Shown: positions 1-54,823 of the stretch, in pieces
Numbering within the stretch: position 1 is the stretch's first letter
Layout of the letters: the number at the start of each line of letters is the position of its first letter
NCBI GenBank assembly: GCA_977020255.1
Contig: CDROCS010006906.1
Location: 1 to 64,000 of the forward strand
Length of the DNA: 64,000 nt
Direction of reading: 5' to 3'
DNA from: Obrimoposthia wandeli
Lineage: Eukaryota
The notes under the pieces: generated by a model
Told to the model about the DNA's origin: nothing
Seen by the model: the letters and a program-made list of their open reading frames with translations, nothing else
The model's database searches: none
Translations under genes and position numbers: made by a program

Positions 1-3000
1 TTACTTATTAATCATAATTTTAATGATTGCAGTCAATAAATTGACTTGTAAACATAATATAATTTGCATATTTTCAATTTAATATATTGTAAGTTATTAC
101 TATAATATTACATTACATAAAAAGTAATTGATAGTTTACTATCGTTTACAATAAATTTATATACATATATTCACTTTAATATGTTGTAAGTTATTACTTT
201 ATTATAATTTCAACAAAAACTAAATAGTTTACTTATTAAACATAAGTTTAATGTTTTGTACAATAAATTGACTTGTAAACATAATTTATTTTGAGAGCAA
301 TTTCAATTTAATATGTTGTGATTATTACTTTAATATAATTTACAACAAAAACTTTAAATAATTTACTTGTAAACTACAATATTTATTTGTTGTTGTATAT
401 ATTCAGTTTAAAATGTTGTAAATTAATACTTATTATAATTTACAACCAAATCTTTAGTATTTACTTATTAATCATAATTTTAATGATTTGATCAATAAAT
501 TGACTTGTAAACATAATATAATTTGCATATTTTCAAATTTAATATATTGTAAGTTATTACTATAATATTACATTACATAAAAATAATGTTGATAGTTTAC
601 TATCGTTTACAATAATTTATGCATATATTCACTTTAATATGTTGTAAGTTATTACTTTATTATAATTTCAACAAAAACTTCAAGTAAGTTTACTTATTAA
701 ACATAAAGTTTGTCTTTGTACAATAAATTGACTTGTAAACATAATTTATTTTGGTATATTTTCAATTTAATATGTTGTAAGTTATTACTTTAATATAATT
801 TACAACAAAAACTTCAAGTAATTTACTTGTAAACTACAATATTTATTTGTTGTTGTATATATTCACTTTAAAATGTTGTAAGTTATTACTTTAATATAAT
901 TTACAACAAAAACTTCAAGTAATTTACTTGTAAACTACAATATTTATTTGTTGTTGTATATATTCAGTTTAAAATGTTGTAAATTAATACTTTAATATAA
1001 TTTTACAACCAAATCTTCAAGTAATTACTTATTAATCATAATTTTAATGATTTGATCAATAAATTGACTTGTAAACATAATATAATTTGCATATTTTCAA
1101 TTTAATATATTGTAAGTTATTACTATAATATTACATTACATATAAAAGTAATTGATAGTTTACTATCGTTTACAATAAATTTATGCATATATTCACTTTA
1201 AATTGTTGTAAGTTATTACTTTATTATAACTTCAACAAAAACTTCAAGTAGTTTACTTATTAAACATAAGTTTAATGTTTTGTACAATAAATTGACTTGT
1301 AAACATAATTTATTTTGATATATTTTCAATTTAATATGTTGTAAGTTATTACTTTAATATAATTTACAACAAAAACTTCAAGTAATTTACTTGTAAACTA
1401 CAATATTTATTTGTTGTTGTATATATTCAGTTTAAAATGTTGTAAGTTAATACTTTAATATAATTTACAACCAAATCTTCAAGTAATTTACTTATTAATC
1501 ATAATTTTAATGATTTGATCAATAAATTGACTTGTAAACATAATATAATTTGCATATTTTCAATTTAATATATTGTAAGTTAATACTGTAATATTTCATT
1601 ACATAAAAAGTAATTCATAGTTTACTATCGTTTACAATAAATTGACTTGTAAACATAATATATTTATGCATATATTCACTTTAAAATGTTGTAAGTTATT
1701 ACTTTAATATAATTTTCAACAAAAACTTCAAGTAGTTTACTTATTAAACATAAGTTTAATGTTTTGTACAATAAATTGTAAACATAATTTATTTTGGTAT
1801 ATTTTCAATTTAATATGTTGTAAGTTATTACTTTAATATAATTTACAACAAAAACTTCAAGTAATTTACTTGTAAACTACAATATTTATTTGTTGTTGCA
1901 TATATTCAGTTTAAAATGTTGTAAGTTAATACTTTAATATAATTTACAACCAAATCTTCAAGTAATTTACTTATTAATCATAATTTTAATGATTTGATCA
2001 ATAAATTGACTTGTAAACATAATATAATTTGCATATTTTCAATTTAATATATTGTAAGTTATTACTATAATATTACATTACATAAAAAAAGTAATTGATA
2101 GTTTACTATCGTTTACAATAAATTGACTTGTAAACATAATATATTTATGCATATATTCACTTTAATATGTTGTAAGTTATTACTTTATTATAATTTTCAA
2201 CAAAAACTTCAAGTAGTTTACTTATTAAACATAAGTTTAATGTTTTGTACAATAAATTGACTTGTAAACATAATATATTTATGCATATATTCACTTTAAA
2301 ATGTTGTAAGTTATTACTTTAATATAATTTTCAACAATAACTTCAAGTAGTTTACTTATTAATCATAATATTAATGATTTGATCAATAAATTGACTTGTA
2401 AACATAATATAATTTGCATATTTTCAATTTAATATATTGTAAGTTAATACTGTAATATTTCATTACATAAAAAAGTAATTCATAGTTTACTATCGTTTAC
2501 AATAAATTGACTTGTAAACATAATATATTTATGCATATATTCACTTTAAAATGTTGTAAGTTATTACTTTAATATAATTTTCAACAAAAACTTCAAGTAG
2601 TTTACTTATTAAACATAAGTTTAATGTTTTGTATAATAAATTGACTTGTAAACATAATTTCTTTTGGTATATTTTCAATTTAATATGTTGTAAGTTATTA
2701 CTTTAATATAATTTACAACCAAATCTTCAAGTAATTTACTTATTAATCATAATTTTAATGATTTGATCAATAAATTGACTTGTAAACATAATATAATTTG
2801 CATATTTTCAATTTAATATATTGTAAGTTATTACTATAATATTACATTACATAAAAAAGTAATTGATAGTTTACTATCGTTTACAATAAATTTATGCATA
2901 TATTCACTTTAAATTGTTGTAAGTTATTACTTTATTATAACTTCAACAAAAACTTCAAGTAGTTTACTTATTAAACATAAGTTTAATGTTTTGTACAATA

Positions 3001-6000
3001 AATTGACTTGTAAACATAATTTATTTTGGTATATTTTCAATTTAATATGTTGTAAGTTATTACTTTTTATATAATTTACAACAAAAACTTCAAGTAATTT
3101 ACTTATTAATCATAATTTTAATGATTTGATCAATAAATTGACTAAACATAATATAATTTGCATATTTTCACCTCATTATATTGTTTAATACTGTAAGTGT
3201 ATACTATCGTTTACAATAAATTGACTTGTAAACATAATATTTTATGCATATATACTTTAAATGTAAGTATTACTTCAACAACTTCAAGTAGTTTACTTAT
3301 TAAACATAAGTTTAATGTTTTGTACAATAAATTGTAAACATAATTTATTTTGGTATATTTTTCAATTTAATATGTTGTAAGTTATTACAATATAATTTTA
3401 CAACAAAAACTTTAAGTAAAAAACTTCAAATATTAACTTGTAAACTACAATATTTATTTGTTGTTGTATATATTCAGTTTAAAATGTTGTAAGTTAATAC
3501 TTTAATATAATTTACAACCAAATCTTCAAGTAATTTACTTATTAATCATAATTTTAATGATTTGATCAATAAATTGACTTGTAAACATAATATAATTTGC
3601 ATATTTTCAATTTAATATATTGTAAGTTAATACTGTAATATTTCATTACATAAAAAGTAATTCATAGTTTACTATCGTTTACAATAAATTGACTTGTAAA
3701 CATAATATATTTATGCATATATTCACTTTAAAATGTTGTAAGTTATTACTTTAATATAATTTTCAACAAAAACTTCAAGTAGTTTACTTATTAAACATAA
3801 GTTTAATGTTTTGTATAATAAATTGACTTGTAAACATAATTTATTTTGGTATATTTTCAATTTAATATGTTGTAAAATATTACTTTAATATAATTTTCAA
3901 CAAAAACTTCAAGTAGTTTACTTATTAAACATAAGTTTAATGTTTTGTACAATAAATTGTAAACATAATTTATTTTGGTATATTTTCAATTTAATATGTT
4001 GTAAGTTATTACTTTAATATAATTTACTACAAAAACTTCAAGTAATTTACTTGTAAACTACAATATTTATTTGTTGTTGCATATATTCAGTTTAAAATGT
4101 TGTAAGTTAATACTTTAATATAATTTACAACCAAATCTTCAAGTAATTTACTTATTAATCATAATTTTAATGATTTGATCAATAAATTGACTTGTAAACA
4201 TAATATAATTTGCATATTTTCAATTTAATATATTGTAAGTTATTACTATAATATTACATTACATAAAAAAGTAATTGATAGTTTACTATCGTTTACAATA
4301 AATTTATGCATATATTCACTTTAATATGTTGTAAGTTATTACTTTATTATAATTTCAACAAAAACTTCAAGTAGTTTACTTATTAAACATAAGTTTAATG
4401 TTTTGTACAATAAATTGACTTGTAAACATAATTTATTTTGGTATATTTTCAATTTAATATGTTGTAAGTTATTACTTTAATATAATTTACAACAAAAACT
4501 TCAAGTAATTTACTTGTAAACTACAATATTTATTTGTTGTTGTATATATTCACTTTAAAATGTTGTAAGTTATTACTTTAATATAATTTACAACAAAAAC
4601 TTCAAGTAATTTACTTGTAAACTACAATATTTATTTGTTGTTGTATATATTCAGTTTAAAATGTTGTAAATTAATACTTTAATATAATTTACAACCAAAT
4701 CTTCAAGTAATTTACTTATTAATCATAATTTTAATGATTTGATCAATAAATTGACTTGTAAACATAATATAATTTGCATATTTTCAATTTAATATATTGT
4801 AAGTTATTACTATAATATTACATTACATAAAAAAGTAATTGATAGTTTACTATCGTTTACAATAAATTTATGCATATATTCACTTTAATATGTTGTAAGT
4901 TATTACTTTATTATAACTTCAACAAAAACTTCAAGTAGTTTACTTATTAAACATAAGTTTAATGTTTTGTACAATAAATTGACTTGTAAACATAATTTAT
5001 TTTGGAATATTTTCAATTTAATATGTTGTAAGTTATTACTTTAATATAATTTACAACAAAAACTTCAAGTAATTTACTTGTAAACTACAATATTTATTTG
5101 TTGTTGTATATATTCAGTTTAAAATGTTGTAAATTAATACTTTAATATAATTTACAACCAAATCTTCAAGTAATTTACTTATTAATCATAATTTTAATGA
5201 TTTGATCAATAAATTGACTTGTAAACATAATATAATTTGCATATTTTCAATTTAATATATTGTAAGTTAATACTGTAATATTTCATTACATAAAAAGTAA
5301 TTCATAGTTTACTATCGTTTACAATAAATTGACTTGTAAACATAATATATTTATGCATATATTCACTTTAAAATGTTGTAAGTTATTACTTTAATATAAT
5401 TTTCAACAAAAACTTCAAGTAGTTTACTTATTAAACATAAGTTTAATGTTTTGTACAATAAATTGTAAACATAATTTATTTTGGTATATTTTCAATTTAA
5501 TATGTTGTAAGTTATTACTTTAATATAATTTACAACAAAAACTTCAAGTAATTTACTTGTAAACTACAATATTTATTTGTTGTTGCATATATTCAGTTTA
5601 AAATGTTGTAAGTTAATACTTTAATATAATTTACAACCAAATCTTCAAGTAATTTACTTATTAATCATAATTTTAATGATTTGATCAATAAATTGACTTG
5701 TAAACATAATATAATTTGCATATTTTCAATTTAATATATTGTAAGTTATTACTATAATATTACATTACATAAAAAAAGTAATTGATAGTTTACTATCGTT
5801 TACAATAAATTGACTTGTAAACATAATATATTTATGCATATATTCACTTTAATATGTTGTAAGTTATTACTTTATTATAATTTTCAACAAAAACTTCAAG
5901 TAGTTTACTTATTAAACATAAGTTTAATGTTTTGTACAATAAATTGACTTGTAAACATAATATATTTATGCATATATTCACTTTAAAATGTTGTAAGTTA

Positions 6001-9000
6001 TTACTTTAATATAATTTTCAACAAAAACTTCAAGTAGTTTACTTATTAATCATAATATTAATGATTTGATCAATAAATTGACTTGTAAACATAATATAAT
6101 TTGCATATTTTCAATTTAATATATTGTAAGTTAATACTGTAATATTTCATTACATAAAAAAGTAATTCATAGTTTACTATCGTTTACAATAAATTGACTT
6201 GTAAACATAATATATTTATGCATATATTCACTTTAAAATGTTGTAAGTTATTACTTTAATATAATTTTCAACAAAAACTTCAAGTAGTTTACTTATTAAA
6301 CATAAGTTTAATGTTTTGTATAATAAATTGACTTGTAAACATAATTTATTTTGGTATATTTTCAATTTAATATGTTGTAAGTTATTACTTTAATATAATT
6401 TACAACAAAAACTTCAAATATTTATTTTGTAATTTACTTGTAAACTACAATATTTATTTGTTGTTGTATATATTCAGTTTAAAATGTTGTAAGTTAATAC
6501 TTTAATATAATTTACAACCAAATCTTCAAGTAATTTACTTATTAATCATAATTTTAATGATTTGATCAATAAATTGACTTGTAAACATAATATAATTTGC
6601 ATATTTTCAATTTAATATATTGTAAGTTATTACTATAATATTACATTACATAAAAAAGTAATTGATAGTTTACTATCGTTTACAATAAATTTATGCATAT
6701 ATTCACTTTAATATGTTGTAAGTTATTACTTTATTATAATTTCAACAAAAACTTCAAGTAGTTTACTTATTAAACATAAGTTTAATGTTTTGTACAATAA
6801 ATTGACTTGTAAACATAATTTATTTTGGTATATTTTCAATTTAATATGTTGTAAGTTATTACTTTAATATAATTTACAACAAAAACTTCAAGTAATTTAC
6901 TTGTAAACTACAATATTTATTTGTTGTTGTATATATTCAGTTTAAAATGTTGTAAGTTAATACTTTAATATAATTTACAACCAAATCTTCAAGTAATTTA
7001 CTTATTAATCATAATTTTAATGATTTGATCAATAAATTGACTTGTAAACATAATATAATTTGCATATTTTCAATTTAATATATTGTAAGTTAATACTATA
7101 ATATTACATTACATAAAAAAGTAATTGATAGTTTACTATCGTTTACAATAAATTTATAATATATTTATGCATATATTCACTTTAATATGTTGTAAGTTAT
7201 TACTTTATTATAATTTCAACAAAAACTTCAAGTAGTTTACTTATTAAACATAAGTTTAATGTTTTGTACAATAAATTGACTTGTAAACATAATTTATTTT
7301 GGTATATTTTCAATTTAATATGTTGTAAGTTATTACTTTAATATAATTTTCAACAAAACTTCAAGTAAACTTCAAGTAATTTACTTGTAAACTACAATAT
7401 TTATTTGTTGTTGTATATATTCAGTTTAAAATGTTGTAAATTAATACTTTAATATAATTTACAACTAAAACTTCAAGTAATTACTTATTAATCATAATTT
7501 TAATGATTTGATCAATAAATTGACTTGTAAACATAATATAATTTGCATATTTTCAATTTAATATATTGTAAGTTATTACTATAATATTACATTACATAAA
7601 AAAGTAATTGATAGTTTACTATCGTTTACAATAAATTGATTTGTAAACATAATATGCATATATTCACTTTAAATTGTTGTAAGTTATTACTTTATTATAA
7701 CTTCAACAAAAACTTCAAGTAGTTTACTTATTAAACATAAGTTTAATGTTTTGTACAATAAATTGACTTGTAAACATAATTTATTTTGGAATATTTTCAA
7801 TTTAATATGTTGTAAGTTATTACTTTAATATAATTTACAACAAAAACTTCAAGTAATTTACTTGTAAACTACAATATTTATTTGTTGTTGTATATATTCA
7901 GTTTAAAATGTTGTAAATTAATACTTTAATATAATTTACAACCAAATCTTCAAGTAATTTACTTATTAATCATAATTTTAATGATTTGATCAATAAATTG
8001 ACTTGTAAACATAATATAATTTGCATATTTTCAATTTAATATATTGTAAGTTAAAAACTGTAATATTTCATTACATAAAAAGTAATTCATAGTTTACTAT
8101 CGTTTACAATAAATTGACTTGTAAACATAATATATTTATGCATATATTCACTTTAAAATGTTGTAAGTTATTACTTTAATATAATTTTCAACAAAAACTT
8201 CAAGTAGTTTACTTATTAAACATAAGTTTAATGTTTTGTACAATAAATTGTAAACATAATTTATTTTGGTATATTTTCAATTTAATATGTTGTAAGTTAT
8301 TACTTTAATATAATTTACTACAAAAACTTCAAGTAATTTACTTGTAAACTACAATATTTATTTGTTGTTGCATATATTCAGTTTAAAATGTTGTAAATTA
8401 ATACTTTAATATAATTTACAACCAAATCTTCAAGTAATTTACTTATTAATCATAATTTTAATGATTTGATCAATAAATTGACTTGTAAACATAATATAAT
8501 TTGCATATTTTCAATTTAATATATTGTAAGTTAATACTGTAATATTTCATTACATAAAAAGTAATTCATAGTTTACTATCGTTTACAATAAATTGACTTG
8601 TAAACATAATATATTTATGCATATATTCACTTTAAAATGTTGTAAGTTATTACTTTAATATAATTTTCAACAAAAACTTCAAGTAGTTTACTTATTAAAC
8701 ATAAGTTTAATGTTTTGTATAATAAATTGACTTGTAAACATAATTTATTTTGGTATATTTTCAATTTAATATGTTGTAAGTTATTACTTTAATATAATTT
8801 ACAACAAAAACTTCAAGTAATTTACTTGTAAACTACAATATTTATTTGTTGTTGTATATATTCAGTTTAAAATGTTGTAAATTAATACTTTAATATAATT
8901 TACAACCAAATCTTCAAGTAATTTACTTATTAATCATAATTTTAATGATTTGATCAATAAATTGACTTGTAAACATAATATAATTTGCATATTTTCAATT

Positions 9001-10571
9001 TAATATATTGTAAGTTATTACTATAATATTACATTACATAAAAAAGTAATTGATAGTTTACTATCGTTTACAATAAATTTATGCATATATTCACTTTAAA
9101 TTGTTGTAAGTTATTACTTTATTATAACTTCAACAAAAACTTCAAGTAGTTTACTTATTAAACATAAGTTTAATGTTTTGTACAATAAATTGACTTGTAA
9201 ACATAATTTATTTTGGAATATTTTCAATTTAATATGTTGTAAGTTATTACTTTAATATAATTTACAACAAAAACTTCAAGTAATTTACTTGTAAACTACA
9301 ATATTTATTTGTTGTTGTATATATTCAGTTTAAAATGTTGTAAATTAATACTTTAATATAATTTACAACCAAATCTTCAAGTAATTTACTTATTAATCAT
9401 AATTTTAATGATTTGATCAATAAATTGACTTGTAAACATAATATAATTTGCATATTTTCAATTTAATATATTGTAAGTTAAAAACTGTAATATTTCATTA
9501 CATAAAAAGTAATTCATAGTTTACTATCGTTTACAATAAATTGACTTGTAAACATAATATATTTATGCATATATTCACTTTAAAATGTTATAAGTTATTA
9601 CTTTAATATAATTTTCAACAAAAACTTCAAGTAGTTTACTTATTAAACATAAGTTTAATGTTTTGTACAATAAATTGTAAACATAATTTATTTTGGTATA
9701 TTTTCAATTTAATATGTTGTAAGTTATTACTTTAATATAATTTACTACAAAAACTTCAAGTAATTTACTTGTAAACTACAATATTTATTTGTTGTTGCAT
9801 ATATTCAGTTTAAAATGTTGTAAGTTAATACTTTAATATAATTTACAACCAAATCTTCAAGTAATTTACTTATTAATCATAATTTTAATGATTTGATCAA
9901 TAAATTGACTTGTAAACATAATATAATTTGCATATTTTCAATTTAATATATTGTAAGTTAATACTGTAATATTTCATTACATAAAAAGTAATTCATAGTT
10001 TACTATCGTTTACAATAAATTGACTTGTAAATATAATATATTTATGCATATATTCACTTTAAAATGTTGTAAGTTATTACTTTAATATAATTTTCAACAA
10101 AAACTTCAAGTAGTTTACTTATTAAACATAAGTTTAATGTTTTGTACAATAAATTGACTTGTAAACATAATTTATTTTGGTATATTTTCAATTTAATATG
10201 TTGTAAGTTATTACTTTAATATAATTTACAACAAAAACTTCAAGTAATTTACTTGTAAACTACAATATTTATTTGTTGTTGTATATATTCAGTTTAAAAT
10301 GTTGTAAGTTAATACTTTAATATAATTTACAACCAAATCTTCAAGTAGTTTACTTATTAATCATAATGTATTAATGATTTGATCAATAAATTGACTTGTA
10401 AACATAATATAATTTGCATATTTTCAATTTAATATATTGTAAGTTATTACTATAATATTACATTATATACATTATAAAAAGTAATTGATAGTTTACTATC
10501 GTTTACAATAAATTGACTTGTAAACATAATATATTTATGCATATATTCACTTTAATATGTTGTAAGTTATT
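1..10571. repeat. AT-rich higher-order satellite array (open at window start)
   Basis: Four related monomers share the core acttgtaaac...tgttgtaagtt.ttact: A ~116 bp (ends gtttactatcgtttac), B ~134 bp (ends aaacataagtttaatgttttgtac), C ~98 bp, D ~137 bp (ends aatcataattttaatgatttgatc). The usual order ABCD gives ~485 bp, with variants of ~385 and 564 bp. The array stops abruptly near 10571. Confidence 0.98.
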
Positions 10572-10627
10572 AGAATTTGTGTTCTTGTATTCAATGATTA
10601 ACTTTTATTAAACTATTATATAACATT

Positions 10628-11225
10628 GACACTCTTATTTTTAAAATTACATTCATTTGCTAAACCCGCTTACTTGTATTGAAATTCATACTATCAATCA
10701 CTTGCTCGTCATACTTGCATTCAATCTAACTATAATTTATTCAACAAAAACTCTATTTTAATTTACTTATAGTCTAAATTACACTTGCATTCAATCAAAC
10801 TATCGACACTCTTATTTTTAAAATTACATTCACTTGCTAAACCCACTTACTTGTATTGAAATTCATACTATCAATCACTTGCTCGTCATACTTGCATTCA
10901 ATCTAACTATAATTTATTCAACAAAAACTCTATTTTAATTTACTTATAGTCTAAATTACACTTGCATTCAATCAAACTATCGACACTCTTATTTTTAAAA
11001 TTACATTCACTTGCTAAACCTACTTACTTGTATTGAAATTCATACTATCAATCACTTGCTCGTCATACTCGCATTCAATCTAACTATAATTTATTCAACA
11101 AAAACTCTATTTTAATTTACTTATAGTCTAAATTACACTTGCATTCAATAAAACTATCGACACTCTTATTTTAAAATTACATTCACTTGCTAAGACTCTT
11201 ACTTGTAAATGACATTCATACTTGC
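10628..11225. repeat. 177-bp tandem repeat, ~3.4 copies
   Basis: gacactcttattt starts at 10628, 10805, 10982 and 11159 (period 177). The first three copies are near-identical; the fourth is partial and diverged. Confidence 0.95.
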
Positions 11226-11560
11226 ATGCATAATTTTATTCATTTACATTCATTCTACCTCTCATTTTATTCAAACTCTCATTCAAATATTCAAATAAAT
11301 TAATATTTTTACTAATTTTCTATTAATTCCGTTGTAACTTAGTCGTTGAAACGAAAAGAATGTATAAAGAATGGACTTTCTTACTTTGTAAATGTTATTC
11401 ACTTAAGTTTGATGATGATATTATGAAATTACATAATAAATGTGTATAATTTTGTATTATTCTCTGACTTCTTTCTTATTTTATTTTTTATTTTAATATA
11501 TAATTGAAGTTATTTAAAGAAATTTTATCATAATTCTATAAATGTGAAAGCCTAGAAAAA

Positions 11561-11724
11561 ACTTTGATCTAAATTTCACATAAAATAGTATGTATGTGAT
11601 TACGTAATGCATTCATTAACTTATAAGAGTGAACTTTAGCCTAAATTTTCACATAGAATAGTGTGTGTATGATTACGTCATACATTCTTAATTGGTAAGT
11701 GTGAACTTTATCCTAAATTTTCAT
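11561..11724. repeat. 72-bp tandem repeat, ~2.3 copies
   Basis: acttt..cctaaattt(t)ca starts at 11561, 11633 and 11705. The full units carry gattacgtaat and gattacgtcat. Confidence 0.85.
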
Positions 11725-11728
11725 TATG

Positions 11729-12096
11729 GACTAGATCACAAAAAAGAAGGGTGGAGACTAAGCCACTTGATCCTTTGAATTAGTGGTTAGCCAAAAATAA
11801 GGGTGGAGACTAGATCACAAAAAAGAATGGTGGAGACTAGATCACTAAAAGAAGGGTGGAGACTAAGCCACTTGACCCTTTGAATTAGTGGTTAACCAAA
11901 AATAAGGGTGGAGACTAGACCACAAAAAGAAGGGTGGAGACTAGATCACTAAAAGAAGGGTGGAGACTAAGCCAATTGACCCTTTCATAGTGATATATCT
12001 CAAAAAGAAGGGTGGAGACTAAGCCACTTGACCCTTTGAATTATGGACAACCATAGATTATAGCCAAAAGAAGGGTGGAGTCTAGATCACTTGACC
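11729..12096 (+). repeat. GA-rich minisatellite with fixed anchor aagggtggagact and 26/52-bp modules
   Basis: Anchor at 11747, 11799, 11826 (aatggt variant), 11852, 11904, 11930, 11956, 12008 and 12071 (gagtct variant). Spacings are 52, 27, 26, 52, 26, 26, 52, 63. Confidence 0.95.
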
Positions 12097-12289
12097 CCTC
12101 CCCTCCCCTCCCCGCCTCCCGCCTCCTCCTAAAGGGTGTCATACCATAAGGGTGTCTTGCCATACCATAAGGGTATATGTTGGGTCACCGAAGGTGAGGC
12201 AACATATACTCTTATGGTGTGGCGAGACATCCTTATGGTATGTCACCCTTTAGGGGGGGGCGGTCAAGTGGTCTAGACTCCATCCTTCT
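12069..12289 (+). other. Nested long inverted repeat (fold-back hairpin)
   Basis: Inner stem 12128-12189 pairs with 12193-12254 (62 bp, 55 Watson-Crick pairs, loop GAA at 12190-12192). Outer stem 12069-12096 pairs with 12262-12289 (28 bp, 26 Watson-Crick pairs). An asymmetric C-rich/G-run bulge separates the two stems. Confidence 0.97.
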
Positions 12290-12572
12290 ACCTACTCATG
12301 CAGTTCAATAAGTTCCATTTGGTAATCATCAGAACAGTCTTCCACTGCCAAATCAAAAGGGTGAGCAAATAATTTGAGTTGCATTTTATTTTGTCTAAAA
12401 TCAGGAAATCTATTTGTAAACTCGGCACACAGCTTTTGTACACCTGGGAAAAAAGTTGGGCTTAAATTAAAGCGATGAAAAGTATATGGCCAAATTTAAA
12501 ACTGTAAAATTAACCTTACTGTGGAGAAACAAATTCAAATCCTGCGGAAGGTAAAAAATAAATTTTGTTAGT

Positions 12573-12637
12573 GAGGGCCGCACTAACTTGCATAGAGGGC
12601 CGCATGTGGCCCGCGGGCCGCTTGTTGCGCACCCCTG
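12573..12637 (+). mobile_element. hAT/Charlie-type MITE right end (fragment)
   Basis: gggccgcatgtggcccgcgggccgc...gttgcgcacccctg is followed by atctagag, matching the Charlie subterminal palindrome, the CCCCTG terminus and the NTCTAGAN target preference. No left end was found. Confidence 0.7.
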
Positions 12638-12689
12638 ATCTAGAGCGTTATAAAAGGTTCTAGCCAAACTTCACAACAGCACCCATCGC

Positions 12690-13493
12690 TTATTATCCTT
12701 TCTTTTGTCAATTTTTCTGTGAATCCTAGCTTCACCTTTCATAATCAAGGTATCATATTTGGTAAAAACAACTTTTTGGAATTTTCCTAAATATTGAAGC
12801 TCAACACTTTCCAACTTGAAAATTCCAATTTCATCACCAAAAGCCATGCAACCAGTAGCAATTGTCACATCTCATACTTTATTTGAGTATTGTAGCCATA
12901 TCCTGATGCTTTTACTGTACAAATATAAAGATGTAACTTCAGCTGATTCAAAAAAGCTGTTAATGCTCACCTTCTGCATCTTCAGAAATAATTAGAAAAG
13001 GAAGTTTATGTTGGTGGATAAACTCTAAAACTTGAATAAAGTTTGAATATTAGATTTTTCTTTCCTGATAACAAAATGTTCGAGTATTGAAATCCACAAT
13101 TGGCATCTTTGTTTATTGATAATGTATGATGAGATACAGTAGCAATTAAACTTCAACCCCTCAATAACTTCTAGTTTTTCCATTCTCAACAGTAATTGTG
13201 CCATATTTACCCGCTTCCTTCATTCCGTCCTGAATAATATCACCAATGTTATTATTCCTATTAGCAGATATCGTGACAACTTGTGAAATCTCTTCCGGGT
13301 TTGTAGTTCGTCTTGGCAGAAATTTTAGACTTTTATCAACATTGTCCAACATATCCATCATAGTAACATCTTGGACTAAGTTTGCACTCATATTCTGAAA
13401 TGTCTTTCAATTTATTATCTTCGACCACTGTCACATCTGCTAATACATCTACTCTAACATAGTTGAACAAGCTTCAACATTAAATTTTACATA
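12690..13493 (-). pseudogene. HSPD1: Decayed, intron-less, 3'-truncated HSP60 (chaperonin Cpn60/GroEL family) pseudogene
   Basis: Collinear minus-strand fragments read VKFNVEACSTML, VDVLADVTV, QNMSANLVQDV, TTNPEEISQVVTISAN..IGDIIQDGMKEAGKYGTITVENGKT, KLPFLIISEDAEGE, TVKASGYG, and IATGCMAFGDE...LGKFQKVVFTKYDTLIMKGE. These match HSP60 motifs, with frameshifts, stops and deletions. Confidence 0.9.
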
Positions 13494-14272
13494 ATTATCA
13501 TAACATAAGCTTCCAACGACAGATATCGGTACTCGTGGAAGCACCACTCTGCTGCTACCATTGGCATTAATTTTATTTATAAACAACAATCCTTACTCAC
13601 AATCATACCTAATTTCACGTACATAAAAACATTAATTACTGGCTAATTATACCATTACAGATTACACAAAATATTGTGTAGACAATCACATGAAACAAAG
13701 TACTGTAATGTGCAAAAAAAGAAATGGTCTCTGATTAACCCATTTAAATGAATTCATGGTTAAACAAAATTTGATTATACCAATTAAATACCAACATTAA
13801 TACAAGTGTTAAAATTTTAACATCGTAAATCATCAAAAATAATTTTCTTTAATTTATATAATTTCATTGATTCATACTTTCATCTTTTCTCAAAAATATG
13901 ACGACTAAAGATACAATTTTCACCTTAAGACGATTAAAAAGCAACATAATATGAGCAGCAAAGTCATTTTGGAAAATCTGTTAAATTATGCAACTACTGA
14001 CAGTTGAAAGTAGATAATGAAATGAAAACAAAATTCCACCGATCCTAATTAGTAATAATTGATCAGAATTGAACAGTAGCAGTAATGGTAAGGTTAAGAA
14101 TGTCGTATTAACAATCTGCAAATCAAGTGAATCATTATTATCATTAGAAGACCAAGAAGGATCATAAGTAAAAGTAGCACAGGAAGCACGCCAGGAAGCT
14201 AACTTAGCAGTCCTTATGTACATGTACACAGCAGCGCACACAAAATGACATCCAGGAGGGGATGGTGATCGG

Positions 14273-14476
14273 TCAGCTGGTCTTGTTGCTCTTGCTGGAG
14301 TTAGAGCGTAGCAGCGAATTACTGGAGCTGCCGGCCGGGGAGTTGCCACCGACAGGGGTCTTGGGAGTAGCAGAGTCAGACTTCTTGACGGCACTGTTTG
14401 AGACTGCGACTCCTCCGTTGCCCTTGGACACAGTAACCGGGGTCTCAGGTGGCTGTGTGAATGGTGGGTGGGGACG
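14273..14476 (-). CDS. PPP2R5: Probable terminal B56 exon, Ser/Pro/Gly-rich tail ([10 protein letters not shown]...[13 protein letters not shown])
   Basis: Acceptor gtgtctcag in phase 0. GC content and C/G-ending codon use resemble the other exons. There is no family homology to confirm it, so this is the least certain exon. Confidence 0.65.
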   Translation of the reverse strand, partial: RPHPPFTQPPETPVTVSKGNGGVAVSNSAVKKSDSATPKTPVGGNSPAGSSSNSLLRSNSSKSNKTS

Positions 14477-17400
14477 CTGAGACACTCCATAACCACTCAA
14501 TAGACAGCATCAGAATACTTAAAGGTCTTCTAAAAATCGAGTCACAAATTCAAATAACAAATCGAAAGCAGCTGCCAATTTATTTGGTTAATGACGAATT
14601 TTATTACATTTGTATTACAATTTTCAACACAAAACAGCTTCTCAGCCAGTAAAAATATATTTCTGTACTCAATTTCAGACTCTTCGAGTAGTGTAATAAA
14701 TTCGCTATGATTATTTAATTTTTCTTTTACATGAACTATCTAAAAACATTGGTAAAGAGTTAGATCTTGTCAAAATGTACATTTCATTGACATTATCAAA
14801 TCTTCTAGTCGCTATGTTATAACAGGCCTCGGCATATTCAATTTTCTTCAGTTTATTGTCGGTCGTCACGGACAGGTCTTCCGTTCTTGGCTAATCACAT
14901 GGATTTGAAATACATTATAATATAATTAATAAATATTAGTTTATGTGTACGGGATATATAAATACAAAGGAGTTTCCAACAATTAATGATTTGTGTGTCT
15001 GCGTGCTACACACACATGGAGACTATACCCAGAAATTTAGGGCAATGAGATGTGAATGTCTATCATATTCTAGGGGAGTAGCAAATCATTGAATTCCTAT
15101 ACTTTATAAATAAAATTATTGACCATTGTAAGATAAACGATTTCTACTTGTAGTACTACATAAGCAAATTGTGTTAATTCCTAAAAATTGAAGTTATTGT
15201 AACAATAAAACTTTCGAATTAAACAATTATGGGTATAACTTTCAATTATCTTTCCCACTGAAATCTCTTATATCTTTATTTAAGTTTTAAAATCATGGTA
15301 GACAAATCGTCAAGTGCAAAGCATGGTCAAGTAAGAAGCGTAGTGAATTTTTATAGACAAGAAGCTCCTGGTGTAGCAAAAATGATCAATTTTAAAGAAG
15401 AAATCAAAGGAGGTTAAACGTTTACCTGCTAAATAGGATAACTACATGTTTTATTGATTCTTTTGTTGACTTCAAGCTTTCAAATTACTTTTTGCGTACC
15501 AAATAGATGTGTTTTTGAAGAACACATTATACGACTTATGTAATCAGAAGCCGGAAATATCCTACCGACAATATTTGCTTACAAAATCTCCTGTATACAG
15601 GTGTAAATATAAATTGGTTTGTAGAATCTAACTCTTTTGAATTATGTCTACAGTAGAAAACATAACTAAACGTGTTGTACAGAAAAAGAAAACATAATTA
15701 AAACTTTAAGAAATATTTTAACTTGATTGTATAATCTCACTTATTTATTGGATGTTGCGCAATACAGTCAGCATATTTTCAGATATTTTCATTTTACGTC
15801 AGAACTGGTGATGGGTTTTCATTTTTAAATGGGATATTTTTAATTTTAAATATAGATTTATTAAATATTATTGTTACACTTAAAATAAACGATGTTTTCA
15901 TCGTAAAACTGTAAAATTTTCGAATGTTAGTAAGAACAAAAGTTAAATTTCACTTTTTATAACACCGAAAAGATGTATTATTTTTTGTGTAAAAATAGAA
16001 TAGCAGAAAATATTTTAGAATAAAGCAAATCTGAGTATTTGTAGCATTATTCAATATGAATATTATTATTTTCATTTATTATCAAAAAAAATCGGTTTAT
16101 GAAAAAGATTAATTTAACTTTCGATAAATAAACCTCAAACTCAACAAAATAATCTACCGTGCTTTTCCAGAATTTAGATGAAATTTTATAAAAAAATATA
16201 TGCGTATTATATATTTAAAAAGATTATTTATTTGTAAATTTTAAAACATTTAGCTAAAAAGTAGTAATTTAAAATATTATATGGTTAATAACCATTGGTT
16301 ATACAACTAGAAAATGCGAGTAACTTTAATAATTAAAAAACTATACATTAAAAAACTTTTTTAAAATAATTAATTGAATGCTTGTCAGGCGACTATTGAT
16401 TTGTTATTATATGAATTTTTAATACAAATAATAAGGTCCTAAAGAAGTTACAGATCATTCTTTACGACGAAACATTTATCATTGTTGGATCGAGACAGCA
16501 TAACATTTGATTTTTTTTAAGAAACATCAAGAACAAGGCAAGTTTTTCACTGTTAATTGCTTTGCTTCGATGGATTTAGAAATGAGTCTGATATATAGAG
16601 TGCTAAAGAAGATAAAAGAAGAAAAGCCCCTTTCACAAAAAAATAGAACAGAACTAAGAAAGTCAAATTACTGGTTAAAAACACAAGAGAACGTATTGGT
16701 GCATCACAGACAAAGATGGCGAGTAAGTTTGGAATCAGCCAACAATACGTTCAAAAGATTCTCAATAAGTCAACTTGTAATACTACAAAAGAATGTCTGT
16801 TCCCAAGAGGAATAAAATAAAAAACAGCGAATCAAAAATTAATGTAGCATACTGAAAAAGATGGATGACGAGTCATATTTCAGCTTAAATGGTGGCGGAT
16901 GAAGTGCTAATAGAGGATTTTAAAAACAAAAAATTATGCTCTCATAATATTCGTTTCAAGGAAAGAGGGAAGTTTCCTCCTCGTGTTTTAGTGTGGTTAG
17001 CAATTGCAGAATATGGTTTGGTAAGTCGACTCTTCATGGATAATGGATAAATGACAGATGACATCAGCATCTGTTCTAACTTTAATTTTAACATTTGACA
17101 TGATCGAGCAACAGCTCATTACATGAAGTGTACCACTGATTTTTCTGAAAGAGATAAAATTAGTTTTGTGACACATAAAGACAATCCCCAAAAGGTTCCT
17201 GAACTTCGACCAATAGAGCACTTATAGTCGATTCTTAAGGCAAAAGCGTATGAAAATAGTTGGATAGCCAAAGACAAGAAGCAGCTAATTAGAAGAATAA
17301 GAAGGGAACTTAAAGATGCAGATAAAGCTGTTGTCCAACAAAGGATGTCAAATGTTAAAATTAAAGTTAGAACCGATGCTGATCAAGGAATTGTTAGTAT

Positions 17401-44400: not shown

Positions 44401-47400
44401 TAATTTCATATTAAATAGAGTCAAACTTCTTAAGCCAGTCAAGCCGATTTTACCGTAATTTTTAAAATATCTATTCGATAAATGAGGTCAAATAATCCAT
44501 TACAGTTGACCAGGTATTTCAAGATATGCCCGATGCTTCCTCTGGAGATGAACATGGCGACTACTAATTAGCGAACCGATGCTGCGACATATTTACAGGT
44601 GCAATAAAGCAGTCTCATCTGGTGAAAATATACTCAACCTTTCTATGAGTGATTTGGATAGATTCATTGATCTTAAATATGCACGTGGGACATTGAGCAA
44701 CACGGGACCACCTGATCGAGGCCCTTGGAATACAAAATGGAATCGTGACATTTCCCCAAATTCTGTGTTTCGTGATAAATTTGTCTCAATCTTAACTCAT
44801 TTTCGCTCTGATGGAGAGTGTATAACAAATCTATTCTGACATCTGATACATGGCCCGAAGTGCTACAAGTCACACGAATTTTGTCTGTTGACGAACTGTT
44901 GTAGCTTTATTCAATATAACTCAAACAAACCATATAAATTAATTTACTCTCATTATCTACAACACTTCTAAGTATTTATGTTTTGATTACTCATATTTAA
45001 GAAAAGATAACAGTCTTCCGATTAATGAACCATTAGCTCATTACACGGTGAAAAACTTAACTGATGATAATGTTCTCTCATCAATATCAGTTGGGAATTT
45101 TTTGAGTCAAATAAATATTTCCTACCACAGTACTTGATGGAAAAAATATTCTTCTTTATTCATCATCAAAAGTCTTTTCATCAATTCGAACTTATCTCGT
45201 CACTAACATTACGTCATATTACCATAACTGACGACAACACAATATAGCCGGGCACTCACACGCAAACCCACACACTTGCACTGTAAAGTGCAACAAATCT
45301 TCGGCATCCAATTGGCCAATTTGAAACTACTAATAAGCAATCAATTATCAACATTACTTTTTGACAAATAGCCGTGACTTACACATTCTTCCGAGTTTGG
45401 CCCTACAAGGTTAATAGGACCAGATTTATTGAAATTGTCAGCTCATTGATAAGGAATCAGCCAGTTTTTTAATAACCCTAAACAGACGCTCTTCACTGTT
45501 TAAGTTTATAAAAAAACAAAGTGTAAGTCGATTGTTTGAACAAAATTACTAGATTGTACACAACACAGCGTACTTGTAAATTCTGACCCGTATATGCTTT
45601 CTACAATGTCCTTAACATGGTGGCCATAAATATATACGCATGGATTGTATACAAGGAAACACTAAGCATCAACATCACACGGCAAAGTATCATGTTGGCT
45701 CTTTTTGAGAAATTTTGCAGATCAGGAGGCATGACAGCACATGGCAACAATTCAGGCTCCTCGTCCAATAGACTAAAGCGACGACATTTTTTGAATTAAA
45801 AATAGCTAGAATGTTTATAATGATATTTACAGATAATATATTTCTATGATAAAAATCGATTTAAAATGTAATAAAAGAAAACCAGTGAATCCGGCATTGA
45901 GGTGTTAACAAACTTTGAAATACACTGATTTTATCTAAAATAAATGAAAATTTCTTACCGAAATTATGAGGTATATCTGATAGTGACAATGTCAATGTGC
46001 CTATGATGAAATACTTACGACTTTGAGGAGGGCTTTGTCCTTTTTGATGAACTCTGTGACACAGTAGGCTAATGGGGGCTGAAAGACGGCCAGGGATTTG
46101 ACTTTGTGCAGAGGCAAGAGGACACGCCGTAGGAAGACTTTGTGTTCCTCTTTCAGAGGCACCTGGAACCCGTTTATGATGCTGCACGAGGATGATCGCG
46201 GAGTGTTGACCTTATCCAGTGCTTGTGGGTGTTGAAATGGGAGGAAGCGGATGTGTAAGGTTTTAAATGCTCTATTTAGTGAATGTGTAATAGGCAAAAT
46301 ACTGCAAATCTCAAATTAAGAAGTGTAAAAATCAACTAAAGAACAATTTGACTTGAAAGAGCTCTAAATATTCTACTAGACTGTGAATAATGTTTGATCT
46401 GATTTCTTTAGTATACTAATTACAAAGAAAGTGTTGACTGATGAATCATGATGAGCAATTAAAAATAGAGAGTTGAGAGAGAAGACAAAATTAGCCGTAT
46501 GAATTTTATTGTGGAGAAAAGGAATATGATGAGATATCAAAGATGTCAAGAAAAGACAAAGTCAGGCAGAAGACAAAAGAGATAGTGTGGATTAGTATTC
46601 CTGATAAGATATGGATGGGGGTGTTTGAAATATTGAGTACTGCATCGTTTTCCATTGACTGATCAAGNNNNNNNNNNNNNNNNNNNNNNNNNNNNNNNNN
46701 NNNNNNNNNNNNNNNNNNNNNNNNNNNNNNNNNNNNNNNNNNNNNNNNNNNNNNNNNNNNNNNNNNNNNNNNNNNNNNNNNNNNNNNNNNNNNNNNNNNN
46801 NNNNNNNNNNNNNNNNNNNNNNNNNNNNNNNNNNNNNNNNNNNNNNNNNNNNNNNNNNNNNNNNNNNNNNNNNNNNNNNNNNNNNNNNNNNNNNNNNNNA
46901 ACACTCAATATTCACCTGCCCAATATCTCCAACAATTCGTTTGTGCCCTTGAAATTCTCGTCTTCGTAGATTTGTCTAAATGCAAAGGAAAATAAAAAAA
47001 TTTAACAGATGCAAAGCCAATAACGGGACAGCACACACCTAATTATAGAGGTAGGGAGTACTCTTTCTGGAGTCTTGAAGTAGCATTATCAGCATCTAAC
47101 AACTTCCCAACAACTACGGGAGAAGGTGAGGGGAAAGTGTGGTGTCGCGAGAAAAATTGAACACAACCAAAGATAATTACATCGATTGTACTCTGAAGTT
47201 TGCATACACATAATTTCTTTAACAATAAACCAAGATAAAATAAACACAATGGGTCGCTTTGAAATTTTAACGTTGTAATCTGATGAATGGAATTATCGCA
47301 AATTCTACTCGCTGATTTTGTGGCATAAACATTGATAACCAATTATCGATTTTGTCTCACAATCGAACAGTGACAAAGTGCTCTAAATTTTAGAGCACTT

Positions 47401-50055: not shown

Positions 50056-50388
50056 CTGCACAAGAACAATCCTCAATATCAGAGAAGAGATATGTAAAAT
50101 ATAGTTAAACTAAATGAGGGAAAAAGGGAAACAAAAAAGTTTTCATAAATTTTAAAATGTATCAACCATATTTGTTTGTAAGAAAATCCAACTTCTAATT
50201 TTTAGCAGATTTTATGCATATCACTTTCAACATTCTTTATACAGTATTATTTTGAGTCTGGAAACTTTTTAAATGATTATAATTTATAAACGACAAAATA
50301 TTTATTTCTAAATATTATTAATAATGCTCAATAACTATTCAGCGCATGGAATAATTGGTTCAACGTCATAGAAAAATAAAGTAGTTAC

Positions 50389-51205
50389 TTTGTTTGAATA
50401 ATAAGATCATTTTGAAATCAATGTTTTTTATAATAAAGTACCTACGTAACAAAAAATCAAATATATATTTATTTATCTACCAGTTTTGTGCGAAACTTTG
50501 TGTTGATTCATAACTTGAGTAAATATTGATCTTTTTCATCGATAAATGTGAATATAAATTTGAAACAACCATAAATATTATATTCGTGATATATAGTTTT
50601 ATGTTGGCGTCATTTCAGGGGTGATTTTGAGTACGGTTGTTATTTGCTGAGAGTGTATATGTAATTGTGTCGATAGAAATGGTCCTTGATGGACGTCTAA
50701 TTGTTGGATATCTCTATATTTTAAGTGTCTGATTTGATTCTATTATGTGAATAGATGAGAAAGTAATTTACCCTAATTTTTTATTTATAAACCGAACTCA
50801 TGTAAAATTTGCAGATCAAATATCATGGTATCATAGACCAGGAGTTCCCAAACATTTTACCGCGGAACCTTTGGTATTATTTAAAAAATATTGGAAGCCC
50901 TACCTATTTAAAAATACTTAAAATCATAAAGTGAAAAATGAATAAAAAATTTAAAGTTAAACTAATGAAGAATTTATTAAGTAGTTATAGTGGGCCTATG
51001 CCCTGGTAAGTAGAGGCGAGTAGCGTTAATGCCAATTTAGTAAATTTATTTTTATTAAATGTCGGCTTGAGAAACCCCTGATTTTGTCTACGGAATCTTC
51101 TTTGGAAACTCCTGCCATAGACTAATTATTTACAATGAAATATGGTTAGGTCAGATATTTTAGCATGTCATGTGAGGATTTGAAAATATTATTTTACACT
51201 AAATC
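50389..51205 (-). repeat. Right arm of the inverted repeat pair, interrupted by a hAT MITE
   Basis: Mirror alignment to 48602-49101 holds on both sides of the 50839-51114 insertion. Confidence 0.9.
50839..51114. mobile_element. hAT-family MITE, 276 bp
   Basis: TIRs caggagttcccaaac and tttggaaactcctg, with an 8-bp TSD tcatagac (50831-50838) / ccatagac (51115-51122). Confidence 0.9.
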
Positions 51206-51649
51206 TGGACGTGTAACAAAACTATCAATCCCAGCAATTAGATGAACAATGATGAGCAAGCAGTCAATGTGATTGAAAATTATGATAAACGATAACCAGC
51301 TCACTGGACATGATTTCTCTTTATTTTGCCTTAATTAAGCATAATATATTGCCCACATGTTCATCAAATAAATCGATATTTCTCCCAAAAGTCCTATGTG
51401 GAAAACGTTAAATTTGTTTGTGTTTTAGCAGAGTTCAACACATGACAGTTTCAGCCACTGAAAGTGAATAAAACATAACTTGTTACAGCGATTTGACTAC
51501 CGATAAATGCTATAATTGAATTCAAGATTTTACTTATTTTCTAAAAAGGTAATCTCTCACAAAACCCCAAATCTTTATTTGATTATTTCGTGTCTGATGC
51601 AGAGAGCATGTATATGAATCTTAGGAGCAACGATGATGACAGCAGATTA

Positions 51650-51855
51650 ATTAAGAAATGATAAAATAACAAACAGAGTAATAGAATATTTGAAGTTTAC
51701 GCTCCGAATCTTTACAACAAACTACCGAAGAGACTGTAATAATATAGAAAAATTCAAAAAGCAACTGAAAAGTTTACAAATCAAAAAATATTAAGAAGAG
51801 AAATGGAAAATATAGAACGCGTTTTAGTAACAAATCATGGATACATTAGATATTA
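51650..51855 (+). mobile_element. L2/CR1 LINE 3'-end remnant
   Basis: APNLYNKLPKRL and, after a frameshift, IEKFKKQLK. Confidence 0.6.
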
Positions 51856-54139: not shown

Positions 54140-54823
54140 GCCATCAGGAGGTTAATAAAGAGATCGTGCTGGCCAAGGTAACAATGCAATCTTGTGTGTC
54201 TGAAAGGTTATTCTTGCAACACGACTCATATGTCGTCCTGCCTTGTCGCGTGTTGAAAAATTAAATGGTTTTCGTGAACAATATTATTATTTCTTCTACA
54301 TATTGCTCAGCATTAAGATTCCCATTATTGCAATCGTCGCCCTTCCTTCATACTAGTAACTTCCCCAAATCATCACACTTCTGTCGCTGTATTGATCGTG
54401 CTCAGCAATACAACGCTCAAAAAATCTCTGCTGGCAAGCTTTTCCATAATTTTTATCTATCATAAATCGTGATTCACCAGACCACATCACTCCCTTCCAG
54501 AAATATTTTGGTATTGTTATAAAATTTTCGCCCCATTGTAGACTTGTAGACGGAGAGCTTTGTGTTGAAAACATAATTCGTTGAAGTGGTCTGTAGCTCT
54601 TGTATCCACAACATAGGGCTCTTCTATAAGCTGTTCTTATTGAGCAAGGAAGTTGGTTACCTGGATAATTGCTCCTTATTATTCGTGGAAACGATGAAAA
54701 CGATTTTTTAAAACATAAATTATAAATCTCTTGTCGTTTAGCTTTGTTCCTTCGTGTGGTCCGTCGTTTCTTAGTTTTATGTTGACATTTCTCTTCACCA
54801 TTTTCGAACTGTATTTCGATCAC
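54140..54823 (-). mobile_element. Tc1 transposase remnant
   Basis: ORF 54353-54823 contains FWKGVMWSGESRF (W..V.WSDESRF) and SVMIWG; downstream LLPWPARS (WPARSPDLNPIE). Confidence 0.85.

Follow-up and report, generated by a model that had tools for sequence, protein, structure and literature searches.

A palindrome-ended motif block beside a satellite array in Obrimoposthia wandeli, a possible decayed foldback-type transposon

Tetris, a foldback element of Drosophila virilis, has tandem repeats in its arms that share a stretch with its terminal domain and that gave rise to satellite arrays (PMC4079207). In Galileo, the arms of a single copy differ in repeat number, and the repeats are proposed to be secondary transposase-binding sites (PMC3573991). 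Helitrons are recognized by a 5' TC, a 3' CTRR, a palindrome of 16-20 nt situated ~11 bp before the 3' terminus, and insertion at an A/T site that creates no duplication. The Helentron, HINE and DINE-1 types have subterminal inverted repeats of 12-15 bp, a palindrome of 5-10 bp placed 8-35 bp before the 3' terminus, and terminal T-runs, and they target TT (PMC4067079). Here, we compare these systems with a repeat-rich region of Obrimoposthia wandeli (assembly GCA_977020255.1, contig CDROCS010006906.1, positions 1 to 64,000 of the forward strand; this 64-kb stretch is hereafter the window), where an AT-rich satellite is followed by minisatellite arrays and a large hairpin (Table 1). The original prediction was that these tiers may be one functional unit. 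At this locus a satellite array meets a heap of dead mobile elements, an arrangement of an ordinary kind. The only coherent unit in it is the 561-bp block at 11729-12289, which we interpret, with moderate confidence, as a foldback-type DNA transposon, or one end of such an element, that is non-coding and has decayed.

What can be observed directly in the block is a snap-back fold, an oriented repeated motif, the absence of coding capacity (the longest open reading frame, ORF, encodes 46 amino acids) and nesting into a broken hAT transposon. The fold is provided by a palindrome with arms at 12069-12189 and 12193-12289. As single-stranded DNA it folds with -92 kcal/mol, compared to -33 ± 3.5 kcal/mol for shuffled sequences (z = -17), and the arms are identical at 86 of 99 aligned positions (87%), the differences being 8 transitions, 5 transversions and one 24-nt microsatellite indel in a C-rich tract. 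The palindrome is strong, and its origin is old, not recent. From the outside to the inside, each arm consists of a 28-nt terminal motif, the C-rich tract, and sub-repeats of 16-21 bp with AAGGGTG, ending at the 3-nt centre. The C-rich tract of the left arm (12095-12129, CCCCT repeats) is 24 nt longer than its right-arm counterpart. The same tract has four G-runs on the minus strand, and its sequence suggests that a G-quadruplex could form there. There is no mirror symmetry beyond 12289, where the palindrome ends. The 9 nt that follow are either junction filler or the tip of an element, and no second copy of them was found at any boundary of the cassette.

The motif at the palindrome ends also builds the array to the left. 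The ends (AGAAGGGTGGAGTCTAGATCACTTGACC and its inverted partner) are the start sequence of every 26-bp and every 52-bp unit of the array. On 11729-12041, Tandem Repeats Finder reports periods of 26 (67% matches), 52 (62%) and 104 bp (91%, the best score); the 104-bp unit comprises one 52-bp and two 26-bp sub-units, and its copies are 96% identical. The sequence AGAAGGGTGGAGACTA(GATCAC/AGCCAC) occurs 7 times in 11729-12068, always on the + strand. Allowing ≤3 mismatches, the 20-nt motif AAGGGTGGAGACTAGATCAC occurs 9 times in the window (0 expected), and all 9 occurrences fall within 11747-12287. Eight are on the + strand to the left of the palindrome centre, and the one on the minus strand is the right end of the palindrome. 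The shorter core AAGGRTR is found 27 times in the window, which is the overall expectation, with 14 occurrences inside 541 bp: 11 on the + strand left of 12191 and 3 on the minus strand right of it. The orientation therefore flips at the palindrome centre, 12191.

Motif position 13 separates the palindrome from the array. Because it is T in both arms (GAGTCTAGA) and A in 7/7 array copies, the palindrome arms are each other's closest kin. Judged from these letters, the array was amplified from a copy slightly unlike the motif of the palindrome arms.

These features suggest a history of the following kind. One terminal motif (AGAAGGGTGGAG.CTAGA.CAC, core AAGGGTG) is common to both arms. Tandem duplication of this motif would have enlarged the left arm, and the right arm retains one terminal and two inner copies, inverted. 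As in foldback, Galileo and Tetris elements, the repeated motifs may have been extra transposase-binding sites, with arms that gained and lost repeats independently. Either the element itself or a larger block that ends in it would have landed in or been joined to the hAT, breaking the transposase frame, and the hAT would earlier have cut an HSP60 retro-pseudogene. The 134-bp satellite would have amplified up to the edge of the heap that contains the 177-bp and 72-bp minisatellites. By analogy with the described elements, we infer that the block was once mobile and that its motif was a transposase-binding site.

The block resembles Tetris and its deletion derivative DAIBAM (PMC4079207). These too are non-coding, with arms that snap back and tandem repeats within an arm that have a stretch in common with the terminal domain. 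The number of repeats varies between arms (in Tetris also between alleles), and the setting is heterochromatic, beside satellite arrays. Tetris differs in scale, with arms of up to 1.7 kb and 220-bp repeats, compared to the 26/52/104-bp units and one 97-nt arm of the block. It is also present in many copies with target-site duplications of 8-10 bp, whereas no duplication was found for the block. Furthermore, the Tetris satellite is made of the element's own repeats, but the 134-bp satellite here has no significant similarity to the block.

The Drosophila elements Foldback and Galileo (P superfamily), whose terminal inverted repeats are internally repetitive (PMC3573991, PMC3688188), show a comparable layout, although sequence similarity to them is not expected. 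Along one of their arms the terminal motif is repeated directly, and in the other arm it is inverted; in the block this is clear for the left side, and the right arm has a single terminal copy. Arms of these elements expand and contract independently, and their repeats are proposed secondary transposase-binding sites. The long snap-back inverted terminal repeats that are a foldback feature are present in the block. Unlike Foldback and Galileo, the block has no associated transposase of the THAP/P type or MULE type, and no target-site duplication was found. Palindromic miniature inverted-repeat transposable elements (MITEs) and long-hairpin RNA loci also resemble its 221-bp palindrome in being short, non-coding and nearly perfectly palindromic, and in yielding a long hairpin if transcribed. 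Palindromic MITEs differ in that no target-site duplication or further copies were found for the block.

Several observations weigh against a foldback-type origin. No target-site duplication is present at the candidate boundaries 11729, 11745, 12069 and 10573, either as ACCTACTCA or in neighbouring bases, although decay or secondary rearrangement could have erased it. The asymmetry of the arms is extreme (~460 bp vs 97 bp): the left side has 11 AAGGGTR cores and the terminal motif 8 times (+ strand), the right side 3 cores and the motif once (minus strand). No autonomous partner or transposase is known for the block. By blastn, a second copy is absent from the 64-kb window, and scans of viral, metagenome and prokaryote-genome sequences and ORF word searches, none of which reached the rest of the source genome, also returned no copy. 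Viral contigs gave nothing or only chance matches of 17-21 nt, the 18 loci from the metagenome scan were all chance matches of 19-39 nt, and two scans of prokaryote genome contigs found no copy. BLAST against plasmids and phages found no match. The hairpin ORF, a 171-amino-acid ORF near the cassette and an ORF that recurs in the satellite had no match in word searches, and in an exact look-up of ten ATG-started window ORFs none was present in the collection.

Some of the same observations are also expected of a repair scar. In such a case, a double-strand break near 12190 in a pre-existing motif minisatellite (~11729-12189) would have been followed by snap-back synthesis that copied ~100-120 nt in reverse, and the new end would have been joined to the broken hAT with 9 nt of filler, making the palindrome an inverted duplication at a breakpoint. 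This would account for a one-sided motif array, the lack of a target-site duplication, a junction that lies inside the transposase frame with 9 unassignable nt between the partners, and the tight 3-nt centre. It is also consistent with the arms sharing a derived base that the array copies lack. However, the inverted copy ends exactly at the first base of the motif core (AGAAGG), a coincidence of about 1 in 10-25, and with 13% divergence between the arms the event would have to be old. The motif array on the left would still need a separate explanation. We consider a repair scar rather unlikely.

Could the block instead be the terminus of something much larger? The original prediction included the end of a hairpin-terminated or rolling-circle element whose internal repeats had expanded into the satellite. 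In part this has held up, as a mobile-element terminus fits the 26/52-bp array and palindrome (~560 bp), but the Helitron/Helentron version fails on the hallmarks of these families. At the palindrome end the flank reads ...CCTTCT|ACCTAC and the 221-bp palindrome reaches the boundary, so the Helitron ends are absent. HINE and DINE-1 (PMC4067079) and the Helentron-borne satellites of oysters (PMC8268682, PMC12628747) are alike in having a tandem block followed by a hairpin and a link to satellites or heterochromatin. They differ from the block, in which the 221-bp palindrome extends right up to the boundary and neither a T-run nor TT occurs at 12289/12290. The short subterminal palindrome of Helentrons was not seen at the 12289 end, and a 5' end would have to lie within the satellite or past it. 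Helentrons have central tandem repeats or a microsatellite, and such sequences are present here (the 177, 72 and 26/52 arrays and the C-rich tract), but these are not family-specific.

The most inclusive form of this idea is a single giant foldback (Tetris-like) or Helentron-derived (HINE-like) element that extends from beyond the left edge of the window to 12289, with the satellite formed from internal repeats and the palindrome as terminus. What the hAT and the HSP60 pseudogene lack is absent from 10573-12289, as expected if a single insert of 12.3 kb or more had entered the hAT, and the edge of the satellite is sharp, with no decay. Expansion of central tandem repeats to satellites is documented for Helentron/HINE and foldback elements (PMC12628747, PMC4079207). 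On the other hand, the satellite monomer has no significant similarity to any repeat in the cassette, the repeat blocks differ in age, and Helitron and Helentron hallmarks are lacking at 12289. Nor was a Rep or helicase match found by a Pfam scan of window ORFs, which covered those of at least 90 amino acids other than a spurious 171-amino-acid ORF (13981-14496) and three ORFs that cross a run of N. One giant element is, in our estimation, distinctly unlikely.

If the block is a foldback-type remnant of some 560 bp, the other tiers need not belong to it. Tandem Repeats Finder and folding confirm that the repeat arrays and the large hairpin described in the original prediction exist. The reported rise in GC content stands in so far as the last block far exceeds the first, but it is not monotonic (satellite 0.17, 177-bp array 0.27, spacer 0.21, 72-bp array 0.27, 26/52 array 0.40, palindrome 0.54). 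The supposed order of shrinking periods is lost once the best period of the last array is taken as 104, since 177, 72 and 104 are not strictly descending. The satellite monomer to the left of the 177-bp array, only 134 bp long, also runs counter to such an order, and three arrays would fall in descending order by chance in 1 of 6 cases.

Kinship within the region is restricted to the 26/52 array and the palindrome. Pairwise local alignments of the satellite, 177-bp array, 72-bp array, spacer, motif array and palindrome are at the level of shuffled sequences, except for satellite against 177-bp array, and blastn of 10572-13700 against the window found no match outside the cassette. A patch shared by eye between the satellite and the 177-bp repeat (TTCAACAAAAACT...TTTACTTAT) had suggested that these are related; we rejected this kinship as not demonstrable. 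Their local alignment scores 42, compared to 25 ± 3.3 when sequences are simply shuffled; with shuffling that preserves dinucleotides, 42 is reached in 2 of 500 cases, and an unrelated AT-rich piece at 36.0 kb scores 41. A profile of 48 satellite monomers found the 177-bp repeat with E = 1.4 only (nhmmer).

The internal homogeneity of the blocks also differs. In the 177-bp array (10628-11222, period 177, 3.4 copies and 96% matches in Tandem Repeats Finder) copies are mutually 96-98% identical, apart from a degenerate last copy (78%) and a partial, degenerate first copy (10573-10627) that directly adjoins the satellite. The 72-bp array is the most diverged of the arrays (82-86% copy identity), and each of its units contains the short palindrome GTATGAttacgTCATAC. 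Given the differing copy identities (96-98% for the 177-bp unit, 82-86% for the 72-bp unit, 96% for the 104-bp unit and 87% for the arms), we argue that the blocks have separate histories. With no significant similarity among the tiers and unequal copy identities, the proposal that all four form one functional cassette, in an order beyond the reach of independent events, is not sustained. In our reading, the spacer and the 177-bp and 72-bp arrays are minisatellites or fragments that are unrelated but share one heap. The locus is a composite that accumulated over time, not a single device.

The satellite array itself is young and homogeneous. Above the ~484-bp higher-order unit sits a super-repeat of ~3.7 kb, and the last satellite unit is 96.5% identical to the copies at both 1711 and 5398. 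Compared with copies along the whole array, the final higher-order copy has 94-96.5% identity. The array continues leftward past the window edge and on the right stops abruptly at 10572, with no decay or loss of homogeneity toward the edge.

Palindromes and satellites are known trouble spots for assemblers. A mis-join of a collapsed satellite contig to a unique contig at 10572, and possibly another at 12289, would be compatible with a satellite that is 94-96% homogeneous right up to a knife-sharp edge, and with breakpoints at 12289-12299 that cut a reading frame. But there is no N gap or evident discontinuity, the degenerate partial 177-bp unit directly after the satellite resembles the natural edge of an old array, and the continuity of the motif between array and palindrome is internally consistent. 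An assembly artefact is therefore very improbable in our judgement.

Table 1. Sequence features from the satellite array to the B56 gene, in window coordinates
Feature	Position	Strand	Description
AT-rich satellite	1-10572	.	GC 17%; 134-bp monomer and ~484-bp higher-order unit (Tandem Repeats Finder)
177-bp minisatellite	10573-11222	+	~3.7 copies; G-poor (33 G vs 125 C)
AT-rich spacer	11223-11559	.	Non-repetitive; GC 0.21; no coding potential
72-bp minisatellite	11560-11723	+	2.3 copies; 82% matches (Tandem Repeats Finder)
Array of the palindrome's terminal motif	11729-12068	+	104-bp unit, 2.8 copies, then two variant 52/63-bp units
Palindrome	12069-12289	.	221 bp; two arms and a 3-nt centre
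9 nt, ACCTACTCA	12290-12298	.	In neither the palindrome nor the hAT homology (alignment with the related hAT copy L019)
hAT remnant, FAM200/ZBED5 type	12299-12638	minus	Transposase homology, terminal inverted repeat and subterminal repeats
Mitochondrial HSP60 pseudogene	12700-13590	minus	Intronless, frame-shifted; residues ~145-372 verified
Putative last coding exon and stop codon of B56 (PP2A regulatory subunit)	14273-14500	minus	ORF

To the right of the palindrome, dead elements are stacked on the minus strand, and in the nesting the HSP60 pseudogene came first, the hAT second and the palindrome block last. A 56-codon transposase piece of the hAT at 12295-12462 ends with ...FAHPFDLAVEDCSDDYQMELIELHE (...ELIELHE). 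A Pfam scan of this piece made no assignment. A HMMER search with its 56 amino acids found 88 relatives, the long ones of which carry the domains zf-C2H2_12, DUF4371 and Dimer_Tnp_hAT, and a homologue, in the locus L019, adjoins a FAM200-ZBED5 RNase-like ORF (PF27073). By this homology, the 56-residue piece is a hAT transposase fragment. The relatives run on with ...ELIELQADMDTK... for ~100 residues past the stop of the window copy. At the DNA level, homology of the remnant to L019 is 78% and ends at ~12299, and the break in the hAT reading frame falls 3-10 nt from where the palindrome ends.

The hAT has its 5' terminal inverted repeat, CAGGGGTGCGCAA, at 12637-12625. Both the domain set of the relatives and the terminal repeat (CAGGGGTG... 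at 12637) place the remnant at 12299-12638 in the hAT family. Three GGGCCGC/GCGGCCC repeats and a palindrome, GGCCCGCGGGCC, occur in the subterminal region of the hAT (12575-12625). These subterminal repeats are probably binding sites of the hAT's own transposase, unlike the motif of the cassette. Because the end motif CAGGGGTG and the GCGGCCC repeats differ from those of the cassette, the hAT and the cassette are different elements. No second hAT end was found in the window, and an 8-bp duplication was not found for this truncated element.

The HSP60 pseudogene was verified against solved structures (E = 5e-12 and E = 3.5e-4). Its position is immediately downstream of the B56 gene; it is truncated beside the terminal repeat of the hAT and lacks its last ~200 codons. 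A Pfam scan of its short ORFs was blank, and 12643-12738 could not be verified as a further HSP60 piece. Six-frame translation of 11180-11760 did not recover the missing parts of either the hAT or the HSP60 pseudogene. The presence of HSP60 and of a FAM200/ZBED5-type hAT is indicative of an animal whose genome is AT-rich (~30% GC), and the window does not resemble human DNA.

The setting was originally described as gene territory with the stop codon of B56 some 2 kb away. The gene is real, as Pfam confirms upstream B56 exons on the minus strand (49795-50076 and 46001-46297), but the exon at 14273-14500 has no Pfam match, so that its identity as the last B56 exon, with a stop codon at 14273, is only plausible. 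Motifs of the B56 C-terminus occur at ~32.9 and 27.2 kb. The exon at 49795-50076 is flanked by ~500-bp inverted repeats (48692-49192 and 50295-50818, 90-96% complementary), and a further inverted-repeat pair surrounds it (49291-49565 with 51501-51797). The flanking inverted repeats are probably two transposon copies in opposite orientation, and could alter splicing of the exon. A run of 232 N occupies 46668-46899 within the B56 gene region.

Other transposon-like sequences are present in the window. Terminal inverted repeats of 110-190 nt bound two elements of ~1.5-1.8 kb (18796-18956/20476-20636 and 16275-16462/17558-17744). Pfam found no match for their inner ORFs, and both are probably decayed DNA transposons. 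On the minus strand at 54353-54823, a 156-amino-acid ORF looks by eye like the C-terminal part of a Tc1/mariner transposase (...WSGESRF...VMIWG..), with no Pfam match.

The position of the block between a satellite and a gene raises the question of function. A 561-bp stretch dense in one oriented motif with four minus-strand G-runs might be expected of an insulator or chromatin boundary, of an origin of replication, or of a locus whose long-hairpin RNA is a source of small RNAs, and the palindrome scores against several Rfam microRNA-precursor models. Yet these scores are far under the gathering thresholds: 75 of 200 bits for MIR839, 43.5 of 84 for mir-3688, 35 of 54 for MIR169_6 and 31 of 80 for mir-3117. 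The models are from unrelated species, and the matches are a generic effect of a long hairpin. At the gathering thresholds Rfam returned nothing, nor did a tRNA scan. The block has a pseudogene and broken transposons around it, no conservation is evident, and its sequence requires no function. A functional non-coding element thus seems extremely unlikely.

The suggestion that the hairpin is the integrated end of a linear extrachromosomal replicon fares no better. No replicon or viral domain was found in the scanned ORFs, plasmid, phage and viral collections provided no match, and the symmetry stops at 12289. The neighbours of the palindrome are the satellite and the hAT and HSP60 remnants, unlike a hairpin telomere of the poxvirus or parvovirus type.

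What would it take for the tiered cassette to be an undescribed system? The same cassette would be needed at other array ends, genome-wide. We regard it as quite improbable that the palindrome-capped block is the conserved terminus of a new foldback-like or hairpin-dependent family that seeds and caps AT-rich satellites across the genome. If it were, the same cassette would mark other satellite-to-unique junctions. Should the block instead be a decayed foldback-type element, it would be one more transposon remnant at a satellite boundary, with no new mechanism. It would help repeat annotation in this genome and would be mildly relevant to the origin of satellites beside transposons, which is already documented for Tetris, Galileo and Helentron-derived repeats.

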